Below are positions 27,501 through 51,534 of a stretch of 64,000 nt of DNA, piece after piece. Origin of the DNA: Trichosphaerium sp. ATCC 40318 (taxonomy: Eukaryota > Protista > Tubulinea); NCBI GenBank assembly GCA_038496445.1, contig JALMLS010000370.1, forward strand, positions 124,001-188,000, written 5' to 3'. The translations under genes and the position numbers were made by a program. The notes under the pieces were generated by a model. It was not told the DNA's origin. It worked only from the letters and a program-made list of their open reading frames with translations, and did no database searches. Position 1 is the stretch's first letter. Each line of letters opens with the position of its first letter.

Positions 27501-30500
27501 GCAGCCGCTCAAGCAATTGGCCTCATCGGTTAGTCTATTTTTATTATTGTTGAGGAAAAAAGTTAACACTGTTTTAGGTCGTTTTTCTGCATTACCGTTC
27601 GCTGATGGCAATCCATCCGATTCAGATACCACATTGACTAAATGTAGCATTGCTACAAAACTTGGTGGCGGCTTGATGTCTCCAGAACGGACTGTGGTGC
27701 GCACCTTATTTTCATTTGTGTCACTCACATTGAACGAATTGTAACACAACCTTCCAATTGTAGATTGAAGCAGCTGCCCTCGCGTTGGCAAATTTGTGTC
27801 TAGGAGAAAATAACCCACTTTTGTCGACTATTGCTATTGATGCTATATTCCGCCGTGCTGACTACAAACAACCTGACTTACACTTCACCCTTGGGTAAGA
27901 GCAAACATCACAATAAATGTATGATTCAATTAAATGGGGTATAGGGAAGCGTTGGCTGTCATAGGAGCTGGTTGGAAGTCTGAGATGTCTCGTGATCCTA
28001 TTACTGGTAACGGGCCACAACACAAATCACCTATAGAGAAGCAAGATGAGCCTATGAATACAATAGTGAACAGGTTGCTTAAACAAACCTTTCACAAAAC
28101 ACTGACTCGTCCTGGTAAGTTCTGTTTTTCCTTTTTTTTTCTACGCACTTGTAATTGACGATTAGTATTTAGGAGCATCAATATGGCTTCTTTGCATCCT
28201 GAAATACTCAGGGCAGCATCCAATATTGTCTGGGTGGCTGAAAGAGATCCAGGAAGTTTACTCCCAGTGTTTGGGTGCCAACGATGGTAATAATCCTCCC
28301 TATTTAAACCTATATAACTCACTCTCTCCTAGATTTGGTCCAAGAAGTGGCTGCAAAGGCTCTTGTTCTCGTATATGATCATGGCGACGAAGGATCCAAG
28401 GGTGAATTGGTTAAAACACTTGTAGAAGCCATCAGCAAAGGTGTGAGATTGAGTTTTGTCGTTGAGGTTAATATTGGTGATAGGTAAGGCTGGTGCCAAG
28501 GTCGAAGATGATACCAAGCTATTCAAAGAGGGCGCGCTAAAGATTGGCGGTGGCAAGAGCATATCCACATACAAGGTAAAAAATACCTCTTCCTCAAGTT
28601 ACAAAAACTTACATTTTGAAGGAACTTTGTGATGTAGCAGCTCAAACCAATCAACCAGATCTCGTATATAAACTGATGAATCTGTCATCACACCACACCC
28701 TCTGGAACTCGAAGAAGGGCGCAGCGTTTGCAGCAACTGAACTAGCAGACAAAGCGGGTGAAGCAATGAAGGAGTACTATCCTGTTCTTATCCCAAAGCT
28801 GTTCCGGTACATAATTTGGAACTACTGCCGTTAATTAGTTATCACGTGTTAATACGAATTTAGTGGATCTTATGATCCTAACTCACGCATTGCACAAGCG
28901 ATGAAGAATATCCTTTTCTCAATGGTAAAAAATCTGACCACAGCGAGTGCGTTTTGAAAAGTATTCTCCATATGAAACACTAACAAGAGCAACAGCGAAT
29001 GATTACTTTGATGTAATTATGAAGGACCTTGTGTCGCACCTCTGGGCGCCAATGTGGCGAGAGCGCGAAGCTGCAGCTATGGTATATCTCCCTTCCTAGT
29101 TATTGACACGGGCTAATATGTGGTAGGGCGTTTGTGATGCATTGCAAGGCAAGACCATGACTCAAGCGGAACCATTTCTTCAAGAGCTGTGGGAAAAGAT
29201 ATTTAAACTCCTAGATGATCAAAAAGAAACTGTCAGAAACGCAGCTATGATGGCCGCCAAGAGCGTTAGCTCCTTGACCGCTAGGTAAGTTTCACGTGAT
29301 GTTGCGAACGCGTTCAGCTAAGACTTATTGTAGATTGTGCGATCCGAGGTTTGCTAAACGGGAGGAAGGCCAACGTGCAGTTGCTATCGCTTTCCCTGTA
29401 TTGATGAATAAGGTATTGTATTGCACTCTTTGTATTTACAAGTTGTGGCTAATAACATTTGGTCTAGGGTCTGAAATCACCCGTAAAGGAAGTTCAGCAA
29501 TTCACTGTGAATAACATTTACAAAATTGCTCGTGTATCATCTCACTTACTGCGAACGCATATTGCCACTGTTGCATCTACGCTCCTAGAATGCCTGTCAG
29601 CTCTAGAACCGCGAGGCCTTGACTACATGTCATTCCATGCACAAAGCTCTGGCATTGGTCAAGAGCAGTTTGGTACGTACCGAACCAATACCACTCTACT
29701 CCACATCACTAACACACTTTGTAGAAGCGATTAGATTGGAAGTGTCAAAGTTGAGCGTTGTCAATGACACGCTAGATATTTGTGTTCGACAAGTGGATGC
29801 TACCAACATTGAAGAGCTTGCGATCAAGCTAGCAGAATTATTGAAGAACGGTATAGGACTTACGACTCGCGTTGGTACAGCCAGATTCATTGGATCTTTG
29901 GCAAATCTCAAGAAAAAGGTATTTTTGTTTTTTGTAAAGCGAGTCCACACACACAGAATGATTTTAATGAACCATTGAGCAGCAAATTGCAACGAGTAGA
30001 AGCAGTATCGGAAAGCTATTAAATGGTTTATTGCGTGGTACTGGTGCTAAATCACCGTCTGAACGCAAAGCGTATGCTGTTGCCCTAGGATTGTTGATGC
30101 CAATTGCGAGCGATAAGCAAGTTGGTAAAACGATAGAAAGGGTACGGTAACAAATAAGAGTTGCAACACCTGTTCATTTTTCTTTGTAGCTTTTGCGGGT
30201 ATTTAACAACGAATCTACACCAGAAGCAATAGAAGGTGCCTCTCACTTTATCTATGAGATTGCCAAGACCTCTCCAAAACGGATGCAACCTTACTTTGAG
30301 TACGTCTCCTGTCTTACTTCTTTTGTGTGCTTAACGAAGTGGTAGCGTGCTGATGCCAATTGTATTTTTATATCGCCAAGACAGCAGCGATACAGTCAAA
30401 AAGCTGTTCAACAACATTTGGGTTGAGATGGTACTTCTTACTCCATTGTTTGACATGATACTTTTATATTTACACACTATGAACAGGGAGCATCCATCGC

Positions 30501-47065: not shown

Positions 47066-47223
47066 TGCGATTTAATTAATTCAGTGGGTGTGGTGAATTA
47101 TTGTCGAAATTTCGACACATATTTAAAATGACCCACTTCGATGCTACAAAATAGTGTTTGCAAAAGAATTTTGACCTTACTAAGAGATGAGGGGGCATTG
47201 TTTATTTAATAGAAGCAACGACA

Positions 47224-49816
47224 TTATCTGCGACCGCGAGACTTTTTGGTTTTTTTGGTTTTTTTGCTTCGCTTGCTTTTCAATGAGTTATTTGATGCTA
47301 CAAGAGGTCTTTCTACTTGATCGCTATCATCGTTGTCGCTATCATCGGATTGCGTCAATTGTTCAGAAGGACGGTCATTGTCATCCGTGCTACCAACTTC
47401 TTGTGTTCCAGATCTGCGGTCTTGAAGCCATGACGAAAACGAAGTAGTTTCACCAAAGTGAGATTCCTCCGAGCTGCTTCCTTTTTCATCTTTATCCGTG
47501 GTTTTCTCAGGTAAATTCAAGGCAGCCATGCTGCTTCTTGGTGTAAGTTGAAGACTATCACTTCTACCTAACTCCACCTAAAAGACAAATATTAGGTATG
47601 GTATAAACACTTTGAGCTTTACCCCTGATTCAGTTTGTCGTGCTCCACCTATGCGTCTCATGATGTAGTAAAACGCAACTCCAAAGAGAACAATATTGGC
47701 TAACACGACACCAAGCACTATAAAAAATGAGAAGAAGGAGACAAAAACGTGATTTCACATACCGATTAAAACGATGTATACCACATTCATGTGATGCGTC
47801 CCAGTAGGGGCAGGAGAATTACCAGTAGATGCAGTTCCAGTACTAGCTTTTCGACCTGCTTTTATGTGTCCAACTACTACAGTATCTGGTTGCTCAACCG
47901 ATATAGGTTCCTGAAAAAATTGTTATTCTATCACTGCATACTTACACTGTTCGTACGATCAGGAAAATTTCTGCTTGTTTGTTAATTTGCTCAGTGACTG
48001 AAGCCACAAGGTCCTTAGATGCCAAAAATGCTTCAACAGTCGAGGCCGGGCCTAATCAAACTTTAGACGATTCGATCAACAACACGACAGTGTCACTTAC
48101 TTTCTCCTTTAGGACCATTCAAATACGACACACGAATATACGTTGATTGTTCTACAGCCCGCTTTCCTTCTTTATGATCTTGAAGAGTTACCTCAACAAA
48201 TGGCCACTCAGTCTTGCCAACAAAGGCTTCTCTGACAACTTCCAACCTCTCAAGACTTGGGTTGTTTGAAGTTTTTGGATCCGTTACTAATTTCAAGCTA
48301 AGTAATGTTAGTTTCAGGTTTCATCACTTGGGCGTACTGAATTTCCCCACATTGCTTGCTCTTTGAAGAAAATGTGATAATATCTTCCTAGTATACATAA
48401 GTGAGAAGAGTGTCAATTTGTTTCGTTGTGTACACTAAGAACCCAATTGATAGCTTCGCCTTCAATAAAGTGCCAAACAAATTCTGAGTCAGGGTAAAAT
48501 TTGGAAGAACCTTCAAATGTTTGTGGTAACTCCAGTTGTTCAACATCAAGCTGTGCAACATGTTATCAAAGAGTTGATTGATGAGATGACGTACGTCTTG
48601 TTTGGGTTCGATATTATTTTGTGCTCCAACTTTGATATTTATCTACAAAAAACCGGTTAGAGGTAACTAGCAATAAAGGCGGTTACATACTGGTTTACCA
48701 TCAAAATTGTCAATGTTCCAACCCAAATGGGCAGTATAAAACCCTGTCTTTTCGTTAAAAGTGACACAATCTAGGCGTGGGTGAAGCTACAATAAGTTAG
48801 TATATAGAGAGGTCTATAAGAGAACATACTCGTGGCGGTAGAGGTTTTGTAGGTGCCGCTGTAGGCGCTGGAGTTGGCGGCTTCGTTGGTGGAACTGTTG
48901 GTTGAGGTGTTGGCGCAGCAGTTGGTGCCTCAGTAGGAGCTGCCGTTGGTTCAGCAGTTGGCGCAACAGTAGTCGGAGCAACGGTGGTTGGCTCGGGTGT
49001 TGGTGCTGCTGTAGGGTGTGGCGTAGTTGGCGGTACCGTTGTAGGCGGGTGTGGCACAAATTCAGCTTCTTTGATGAGGTTCCCAAACAGATCCATCAAA
49101 ATTGCAACGCCTCTCGCTTCTGTATCTTTTACAGTGCGCACCTGCACAAGTAAGTATTTGATAACATGATGGTATGCGTACCTTCATATCCAAGTGGTGA
49201 TCGCCTCTGGTAAAAACGCCATCTGTATTTGATATAGGTGTTGCACGTACATTAAATCGGGCTGGCCTATATTTTTTACCGGATGTGTCTTGGTACTTGG
49301 AGCGTTCGTTGAGATGCAAATCAATAACCATCTCGGCTTCTGTTACTTGGACACTATTCATAGGCAACATAGAGATTAGAGGGAGCTACAAAAAATAGTT
49401 TAGACAAAGATCTGGACGAGTGGATCAAGCGGCCATCTACCTTGATAGTTGTTTCTCCATCTGCTTCTTTAGACGTGAAAGAAAGCTTATTTACGGTTAG
49501 TAAAATGGATTGTCAAAGGACTGTACCATTCTCAGATCGCCATTCTCGTCGAAGCTGACAGAGTTTATCATATCCAATTGGGCCTAACGCAGTGAGCATG
49601 AACCGCCTTGTCAAACTACTTACAATTTCAGCACTAGCTTGTGCATCAACTATACTTGTCAAAGTGGCTCCAATTAGCCCACCAAAGTTAACATTTGATA
49701 CGCTTTCGGCCTTGCATGCGTTTATCGCAATGAGACTCGCCAAAAAGGCGTAAAATAACCTAACAGGGATCGAATAAGCATCTAGGGGTGCTTTATGTAG
49801 GCGCGTACACTTTCAT
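47224..49816 (-). CDS. Type I membrane protein: signal peptide, DUF2589-like domain, PTAA mucin-like stalk, beta-rich domain, transmembrane helix, Ser/Asp- and Lys-rich tail
   Basis: Signal peptide MKVLFYAFLASLIAINACKA. Then NFGGLIGATLTSIVDAQA..MINSVSFDENG..TIKLPLISMLPMNSVQVTEAEMVIDL..DTEARGVAILMDLF; PT repeats; PRLDCVTFNEKTGFYTAHLGWN; transmembrane VVYIVLIVLGVVLANIVLFGVAFYYIM. Confidence 0.75.
48832..49053 (-). repeat. Pro/Thr/Ala tetrapeptide (PTxx) repeats
   Basis: PTTVPPTTPHPTAAPTPEPTTVAPTTVAPTAEPTAAPTEAPTAAPT... Confidence 0.9.
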
Positions 49817-50177: not shown

Positions 50178-51534
50178 ATGACACTTGATACGCGCTACGC
50201 GATATTAATTACATTGGTGTATTTGGTTTGTGTTGAACCTCATGTTGTACGAAAGCACTCACAAAACTTACGCTAACGCGTCCGTCAGCGATTTAAATGC
50301 CCTGCACCGCGAAGTAGCAAGTCTGGGATAAAACAGGTTACATTGCTACCATCTTGAGCGCAAACAACCTAAGCAAGTATGTAGGGTCCGTGTGGTGACG
50401 AAACAGGCATGCTAGAAATGAATCCGAGAACAGCAGTGCAACCAGGGTTATTTACCGTATATTGGGAAGAAACTATCCAAGTAAGCCCTATTACGTTGCC
50501 CTAATTAATATCGTAAGCACTATGGAAGCCCTTTCCGAATTAGCCTTAGTATAAATGACGACTCGCTGTATGAGGACTTTGGTGCGCTCCATCAACTACG
50601 TTCGATCATTTGACACGTCCTAGTGCTTGCTGATCATATTCCTAATCATCACGTGGGTACGATTTGTGTAATTTCTTGATACACGTCAGTACAACTTCAT
50701 ATCCAACTCATTTTAATCCAAAGTCCCTGATGATATCGTCGACTATGCTCTCACAATAACGATACCGGATATTGACTGTGTAAAGTGCTCCCTTCAAATC
50801 ATACAACCAATGACGGTACCCCTCCTCTACTGTGCGCGTTTCATTAAAAGCTGACTAGATTTTAGGACAAGATAGGTAAGTTACAGTCGTAATGTGACGT
50901 CACACATATCCACAAACTTTTTTACAGGTGGAACCAACTGGTCAAATAAAACAGCGTGTATTTACGACGCCAATTCTCACACGGACAGAAACAATGAACC
51001 ATACTGCTTTAGTGTATACCACTCCTGCGCCAATATTCGGATAACAGGGTAGGGAACCCATCCATGAGGCACATACCCAATTGCTAACTACACATGTAGA
51101 AGTCAGGATCCTGCTGCCTGGGCATACTCTTATGAGGCTAGCAAGCCTACTGGATGGCCCTACGGTATGACACCTACAGCTAACCAATTCTTCAGTTGTT
51201 TATCATTTTTACAGCAAAGGGCGGAGAGTACCTTACCACAGAAACCACAGACTATGACGGTGAATGGCCTATGGGATTTAAAGGTCCTGAAGTAGGTATT
51301 TGTGCGCCAACGCTAGCACCAACTACTAGCGCTCCTGTAGCCCCAGTACCGCCAACCACTAGCGCCCCTATAGTGCCAGTAGAACCAATGTCACCGGTAG
51401 CACCAACTAGCAGCCCAACAGTTTCACCTACAGTTGATGTTTCTACCACTTCATCCGCCTTTACCCAATTTGTTGACCACATGGCAACAACATTTTTTTG
51501 CTTAATTGTCTTGGTGAGTGTCGTTAATTGCTGA
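50178..51534 (+). CDS. Secreted, probably GPI-anchored histidine-brace (LPMO-like, SCE4755-type) copper protein with P/T stalk
   Basis: Signal peptide ending ..VCVEP, then H-V-RFKCPAPRS..IKQGPCG, VYWEETIQHYGSPFRI, LADHIP, TIPDIDCVKCSLQIIQPMTDK and VYHSCANIRITG. C-terminal STTSSA-spacer-hydrophobic tail. Confidence 0.8.

Follow-up and report, generated by a model that had tools for sequence, protein, structure and literature searches.

DUF2589 (PF11655) is a known but uncharacterized protein family that receives only passing mentions in the literature. It is overwhelmingly bacterial (a search of the ESM Atlas returned only DUF2589 clusters, mostly from Pseudomonadota) and patchy in its distribution, being present in 6 of the 201 sampled genomes from the phylum of an Opitutae metagenome-assembled genome (MAG). 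Elevated transfer of genes from bacteria has been reported for the genome of the amoeba Trichosphaerium, and Table S3 of that report lists TRSP24482.t1, a "DUF2589 domain-containing protein" with 3 introns, among the transfer candidates (PMC10521059), so that transfer of DUF2589 into this organism is already on record. Here, we describe a different gene, found in a 64,000-nucleotide (nt) stretch of Trichosphaerium sp. ATCC 40318 (contig JALMLS010000370.1, positions 124,001 to 188,000, hereafter "the window"), which represents a new architectural variant of the DUF2589 family. We consider it quite probable that this single gene encodes a type I membrane glycoprotein displaying a divergent DUF2589 domain as its outermost part, with the history and mode of action proposed below. 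The fusion of a DUF2589 head to a surface protein appears to be unreported.

In three unrelated bacterial neighborhoods (L017:3401-5504, L018:6001-7884 and L019:6001-7946), the two genes downstream of the DUF2589 gene are the same each time; they are unnamed and code for proteins of ~230 and ~188 amino acids (aa), in which no Pfam, NCBIfam or PADLOC family was detected; the N-terminus of the ~230-aa partner is itself weakly DUF2589-like (hhalign P 0.002). Together, the three genes look like a mobile cassette. The head of the window protein and the bacterial proteins have in common an N-terminal helix (F..LIG.PL.A...AQ ... VDFI..VGF), a [LIV]PL[LI].MLP strand, a beta-rich middle and a C-terminal helix (V R.V.D....G...L..L...I.E), in identical block order. 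However, the bacterial proteins stand alone at ~190 aa, lack a signal peptide and belong to the three-gene cassette, whereas the window copy is a secretory 656-aa fusion without the AGWGP turn and with a hairpin shorter by 11–12 residues.

Three further comparisons frame this locus. The same genome contains a cluster of DUF2589 genes, A, B and C, on contig C226 (one of which is TRSP24482.t1), which have the same domain and signal peptides and share phase-0 intron positions with the window gene. Genes A, B and C pass the Pfam cut-off, with gene C showing 46% identity to proteins from bacteria, whereas the window gene is unlinked to the cluster (it lies on contig C79), much more divergent, membrane-anchored and equipped with a different stalk. 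A second set of amoeba genes, the PRxDC family, has the Pro/Thr-rich stalk, the phase-0 intron two codons before the PRxDC motif and the second domain of the window gene, but carries other heads, a third domain with a KRQ motif to which the window gene shows no detectable match and, in the three members inspected, ends resembling glycosylphosphatidylinositol (GPI) attachment signals. Finally, animal membrane-tethered mucins are similar in manner of working only: they combine a signal peptide, a terminal head, a Pro/Thr stalk, juxtamembrane domains, a single helix and a Ser/Thr tail, but no sequence relationship to them was found, no SEA domain was detected in the window protein, and glycosylation of the latter is putative.

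The window gene and its DUF2589-like head

Conceptual splicing of the minus strand yields one gene of 15 coding exons (49816..47224), in which all 14 introns are GT-AG and 37–55 nt long, and the joined exons form one open frame of 1971 nt (656 codons). Position 49816 is the A of the ATG and position 47224 the final base of the stop codon, such that the interval 47224-49816, proposed in an earlier sequence-only reading, is the exact ATG-to-stop span. That reading had envisaged a signal peptide, head, stalk, second domain, transmembrane helix and tail, with an intron-split domain on a surface-type protein, and all these elements are present in the order given: the 15-exon model has a type I layout, in which the signal peptide precedes a head of ~150 aa, a stalk of 76 aa and a Cys-bracketed domain, followed by a transmembrane helix and, at the end, a tail of ~129 aa (Table 1). 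The signal peptide, MKVLFYAFLASLIAINACKA, is encoded by the 8-nt exon 1 together with exon 2, the frame of which is open and lacks an ATG of its own; exon 1 joins it via a 49-nt GTACGC..TTAG intron. The motif LIGxxLxxxxxAQ falls in exon 2, LPLxSMLP at the start of exon 5 and GV..LMDL in exon 6, and the PRLDC..FYTAHLGWN..LPQTF pattern is spread over exons 7-10. The base composition of the gene looks native (42.3% G+C, vs 41.3% for the whole window).

All searches, family scans and scores were obtained exon by exon, and exons were joined only for the frame check and translation. Against a profile that summarized 125 DUF2589 proteins from bacteria, exons 2, 3, 4, 5 and 6 aligned to positions 6-30, 35-47, 62-72, 82-114 and 162-188, respectively, in strictly collinear order, with individual scores of 15.7, 5.0, ~0, 5.8 and 3.8 bits. 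The summed score of this chain, 30.3 bits, compares with a maximum of 10.2 bits for residue shuffles, none of 2000 reaching the observed value. Ranked within a six-frame null of 2757 open segments of the window, exon 2 came 1st, exon 5 3rd and exon 3 5th; a segment at 29699-30046 (-) that scored 7.8 bits on the bacterial profile had no Pfam match and was taken as a chance hit. In a Pfam scan of exon 5, PF11655 was the sole match (13.5 bits, E 0.092, profile positions 67-120 of 154).

The blocks conserved across the family, namely, the N-terminal helix, the core strand and the C-terminal helix, occur in the head in family order. The central Ser/Thr/Gly-rich hairpin has been remodeled: it consists of 36 aa, vs 47-48 aa in the bacterial protein P0004 and in gene C, contains no Trp, and is 33% charged, vs 17% in P0004. 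The AGWGP turn, invariant in 34 bacterial sequences, is absent from it. By these sequence comparisons, the head is a true but divergent DUF2589 homolog that fails one family-invariant feature. The DUF2589-like character that the sequence-only reading had seen in a motif pattern is borne out at the profile level, and its description of the family as mostly prokaryotic is likewise supported.

A phmmer search with exon 5 against 1.84 billion representative proteins gave only two matches and no close relative of the fused head. Both matches, P0009 (12 FN3-like repeats) and P0010 (4 RRM-like repeats), were rejected as spurious because weak similarity had been added up over the repeats; the 68-aa query reached an E-value of 1e-37 with the 12-repeat protein in this way. 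An AlphaFold2 model of P0004 (34 sequences) had a predicted local distance difference test (pLDDT) score of 51, and the best matches in a PDB structure search (SecB-like proteins, porins and hot-dog thioesterases; peak Z 5.2) were at noise level, so that no fold was assigned to DUF2589; a PDB sequence search with the DUF2589 profile gave chance-level matches only. The prediction for a P0004 homodimer scored 0.00 and carries no weight either way.

Table 1. Features of the window gene, in window coordinates
Feature	Position	Strand	Basis
Coding exon 1 (predicted): ATG plus 5 nt, start of signal peptide	49809..49816	-	predicted; sole ATG entering the frame of exon 2
Exon 2: rest of signal peptide and DUF2589 N-terminal helix motif NFGGLIGATLTSIVDAQ	49624..49759	-	profile, tblastn
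Exon 3: second half of helix (LDMINSVSF..GDLRM)	49527..49583	-	profile, identity to gene C
Exon 4: first strand of head and variable loop	49441..49485	-	collinear placement, between two shared introns
Exon 5: core strand (LPLISMLP..) and shortened, charged central hairpin	49182..49385	-	PF11655 match
Exon 6, first 28 codons: C-terminal helix of head (VRTVKD..GVAILMDLFGNLIKE)	49058..49141	-	profile
Exon 6, remainder: 76-aa Pro/Thr/Ala stalk	48830..49057	-	composition
Exons 7-10: Cys-bracketed PRxDC..Y.A.LGW domain (domain 2)	48338..48786	-	paralog profiles
Exons 11-12: ~100-aa juxtamembrane region	47948..48297	-	no family match
Transmembrane helix (VVYIVLI, V, LGVVLANIVLFGVAFYYIM), split by intron 13, then RRIGGAR	47659..47784	-	hydropathy
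Exon 15: putative cytoplasmic tail and stop codon	47224..47577	-	composition
AATAAA, 20 nt past the stop codon, possible polyadenylation signal	47201..47206	-	sequence motif

Stalk, second domain and membrane anchor

The stalk, which begins within the same exon 6 that completes the head, is 80% Pro, Thr and Ala and gives a weak match to PT repeats. Downstream of it, exon 9 finds weak paralogs in the amoeba's own genome, and a search with a paralog as query returned 45 matches at 34 distinct loci, with at least 34 other loci carrying domain 2 (among them C144:91292, C16:575395, C21:198451 and C157:121421). Members of this family are laid out as a variable head, a Pro/Thr stalk, the PRxDC..Y.A.LGW domain and then further domains. 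Scored with paralog profiles, exons 7, 9 and 8 of the window gene reached 37.6, 24.5 and 9.2 bits, in each case with none of 2000 shuffles as high. In the window gene and in all four paralogs checked (L011, L012, L014 and L071), a phase-0 intron is located exactly two codons before PRxDC, and the two cysteines that bracket domain 2 in the window gene are encoded by exons 7 and 10, respectively. Judging from these sequence features, the stalk and domain 2 of the window gene belong to an amoeba-specific PRxDC family whose members bear different heads.

The other heads include Cys-rich PAN-like repeats (L011 and L015) and unassigned regions (L012-L014), and the C-termini of the three paralogs inspected are short, hydrophobic and GPI-like. 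At ~22 loci, domain 2 has a third domain beside it, marked by a conserved KRQ motif; the S-K-R-Q motif of this domain, placed ahead of a beta-strand, looks like a site for dibasic processing. Searches of Pfam, NCBIfam and PADLOC with domain 2, the third domain and the paralog heads gave nothing but weak hints of Extensin/PT and PAN, and an AlphaFold2 model of domain 2, made from the intron-free paralog L071, was unusable (pLDDT 41). The juxtamembrane region encoded by exons 11-12 matched no Pfam or NCBIfam family, and a genome search with it returned only the self-match. A "SEA-like" reading of this region by eye was dropped after its scores proved no better than those of shuffles.

The 12-residue Kyte-Doolittle hydropathy of the predicted product reaches 2.44 in exon 2 and 2.62 in exon 14, and the RRIGGAR sequence after the latter peak places a positive flank on the C-terminal side of the transmembrane helix. 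The tail that follows contains 32 Ser/Thr in 117 residues. Its first 97 residues are acidic as well as Ser/Thr-rich (22 Asp/Glu vs 9 Lys/Arg), and its last 20 are polybasic (12 Lys/Arg); the tail had been described as basic and rich in phospho-acceptors, but its basic character is confined to the end. The tail exon matched no Pfam family, and a word search with it found no database relative of comparable length. No N-x-S/T sequons were found in exons 2-14. Hydropathy and composition support surface display and the layout of a type I membrane glycoprotein.

A neighboring gene at window positions 50178-51534 (+) diverges from the window gene, starting ~360 bp from its ATG. Its product has a Pro/Thr/Ser-rich stretch at the end and a hydrophobic, GPI-like C-terminus. 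The two genes, both of the secreted/surface type, may share one promoter region.

Descent of the head

A PF11655 search of the whole 70-Mb Trichosphaerium genome gave three matches (47, 40 and 28 bits), clustered in a 6-kb stretch of contig C226. The three corresponding gene models, A, B and C, each have a signal peptide and spliceosomal introns; gene A encodes an acidic tail, and gene C stops just past the domain. Intron 1 of gene A (L006:3905-3950) has a GC-AG boundary with the donor GCAAGT, the only choice that keeps the frame open, and between genes B and C, a gene with a long (EPVKT)n repeat stalk is present at L006:6900-7600 (-). A paralog exon is 100% identical to a peptide of the Trichosphaerium transcriptome MMETSP0405 (taxid 498012).

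Several features connect the window head to this cluster. When the 10-kb C226 locus was searched with tblastn, exons 2, 3 and 5 of the window gene matched genes C and A in order, with E ~1e-4 each, and exon 3 and its counterpart in gene C shared 53% identity across 19 aa. The positions of introns also coincide. At profile position 81/82, directly ahead of the [LIV]P[LF] strand, the window gene and all three cluster genes have an intron; another, following the G..[RK][MT] motif and corresponding to the end of exon 3 in the window gene, is common to the same four genes; and a third, before VR.V, is common to the window gene and gene A. All the introns that the window head and the C226 genes have in common are in phase 0. 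Because introns are absent from bacterial genes, these positions argue that the head comes from an amoeba gene that already contained introns, and not from a separate transfer. From these comparisons, the head is probably a duplicate of an intron-bearing DUF2589 gene of the amoeba that was joined to a resident stalk cassette. The earlier proposal of a domesticated bacterial module stands with respect to bacterial ancestry, with the refinement that, given the introns common to the head and the C226 genes, the head was probably not fused directly from bacterial DNA.

The link to bacteria is most evident for gene C, the last exon of which is 42-46% identical to PF11655 proteins of 191-197 aa, with E-values down to 2e-20. 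These relatives form a highly conserved group of ~1700 sequences, whose named members come from marine Gammaproteobacteria and the Opitutae MAG (among those of ~191 aa, Vibrio natriegens, Thalassolituus, Bacterioplanoides and Aliikangiella), and the three relatives inspected are located in ordinary bacterial gene neighborhoods. In a phylogenetic tree, the gene C exon fell on a long branch inside the clade of gamma-type ~191-aa proteins (97/63 with P0002). Taken at the sequence level, a bacterial origin of the head is supported. DUF2589 also occurs as paralog pairs in bacteria: five genomes from the phylum of the Opitutae MAG G001 (G079, G085, G088, G121 and G163) carry two DUF2589 genes each, ~1.7 kb apart (L020-L030), encoding proteins of ~280 and ~200 aa that score ~98 and ~57 bits with PF11655.

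Possible function and alternatives

The history that we propose would have started with a bacterial gene that was integrated into the nuclear genome, gained a signal peptide and introns, and was duplicated. One copy would then have been joined, at phase-0 introns, to the stalk cassette of the PRxDC family, with a transmembrane anchor and a long tail in the position where the three inspected paralogs have GPI-like ends. In the resulting protein, the stalk would hold the head away from the membrane, and the layout suggests that the head acts as a binding module. Because the hairpin has been remodeled and the AGWGP turn lost, while the helices and the core strand were kept, the sequence makes it more likely that the head docks onto other proteins than that it exerts an activity conferred by the hairpin; its partners could be the secreted DUF2589 proteins or the head itself. 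The Ser/Thr-rich tail with its polybasic end could couple the protein to the cell cortex. The capacity to form oligomers and the roles in adhesion, the glycocalyx or prey recognition that the sequence-only reading had proposed are conjectural.

Several points weigh against this reading. Every single exon of the head scores below the 23-bit gathering cut-off that Pfam applies to PF11655, and the 8-nt coding exon 1 is predicted from sequence. In the tree, exon 5 of the window gene saturates, with a branch length of 10 and no placement; this exon is too short and divergent, and, with its branch saturated, we draw from the tree no claim of a particular donor or of monophyly, such that the case for descent from the C226 genes is built on the positions of introns and on short stretches of local similarity. 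Neither the search of 1.84 billion proteins with exon 5 nor the word search with the tail exon recovered a transcript-derived peptide. Exons 11-12 scored no better than shuffles against the third-domain profile of the paralogs, leaving a similarity noted there by eye, a Lys-Arg pair included, statistically unsupported. Finally, the mode of action is read from the layout, against a background of a low-confidence model (pLDDT 51) and noise-level structural matches.

The main alternative is a purely structural role, in which the window protein would be a passive part of the fibrous coat, or test, that covers the Trichosphaerium cell (PMC10521059), and the head, as one of many exchangeable caps in a family with mucin-like stalks, would have no specific ligand. 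Such a role would fit the many loci that combine the same domain 2 with different heads as well as the Pro/Thr/Ala-dominated stalk. However, a transmembrane helix followed by a long Ser/Thr-rich tail, in place of the GPI-like ends of the three inspected paralogs, suggests coupling to the cell interior, and we regard the passive role as unlikely, albeit the strongest competitor.

Somewhat more doubtful, in our assessment, is a specific arrangement whereby the window protein would be the tethering subunit of a multi-subunit extracellular assembly formed by the secreted C226 proteins, namely, the DUF2589 paralogs and a putative homolog of the partner gene. In its favor, bacterial DUF2589 was accompanied by two conserved partners in 3 of 3 contexts inspected, the weakly DUF2589-like N-terminus of one partner suggests hetero-assembly of related subunits, the amoeba retains several clustered secreted paralogs, and the window copy, although its hairpin is remodeled, still has the helices and the core strand. 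Conversely, the window gene and the cluster are on different contigs, and a genome-wide search of the amoeba with one bacterial partner gave no match, the only trace being a local match of 8 bits beside gene A. This match lies just upstream of gene A, at L006:3272-3361 (-), in a divergent gene with a signal peptide, and was found with a profile of three ~230-aa partner sequences (8.1 bits, E 0.12; ...YREDPLL... vs ...YKDHPLLEG...). A still more far-reaching conjecture from these sequences, to which we assign a low probability, is that the amoeba has rebuilt the module of DUF2589 and its partners as an extracellular system, in which the clustered secreted paralogs would make up the working assembly, whereas the unlinked window copy, with its remodeled hairpin and membrane anchor, would dock this assembly to the cell surface and would signal through its tail. 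If true, eukaryotes would have gained a new kind of surface machine, with bacterial ancestors, in this amoeba.

It is very improbable that our model merges two genes, one for a secreted DUF2589 domain with a stalk (exons 1-6) and one for a separate surface protein (exons 7-15). The failure of exon 5 and the tail exon to match transcript-derived peptides is compatible with such a split, and retention of intron 6 would lead to a stop after 11 codons, making a secreted isoform with head and stalk possible. However, exons 6 and 7 are only 43 nt apart, exon 7 lacks both an ATG and a signal peptide of its own, four paralogs have the stalk directly upstream of the same phase-0 intron before PRxDC, and the frame is open through all 14 junctions. 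Two features argue for a single transcript: exon 6 stays open from the last part of the head into the stalk, and the intron between the stalk and domain 2 is conserved.

Least of all do we credit chance or convergence as the source of the likeness of the head to DUF2589, an explanation close to refuted: the low scores of single exons (13.5 bits at best) and the two spurious repeat proteins as sole phmmer matches of exon 5 speak for it, but the collinear five-exon chain that no shuffle equaled, the independent exon-wise matches to the amoeba's own PF11655 genes and the common intron positions all contradict it.

Under the favored reading of a stalked, membrane-anchored DUF2589 protein, the locus records the path of a domain from a bacterial gene to a nuclear gene with introns, then to a tandem family and, eventually, to an exon-level fusion with a surface cassette, each step being marked by intron positions. 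The fusion would place DUF2589 outside a eukaryotic cell on a defined stalk, making it accessible for studies of binding and localization, an access that the cytoplasmic bacterial proteins do not offer. Moreover, the locus brings to light the PRxDC family, a large and unannotated set of stalked surface proteins whose heads are interchangeable, in an amoeba with an established record of heavy gene transfer, and this set offers a candidate route for turning acquired domains into surface molecules.

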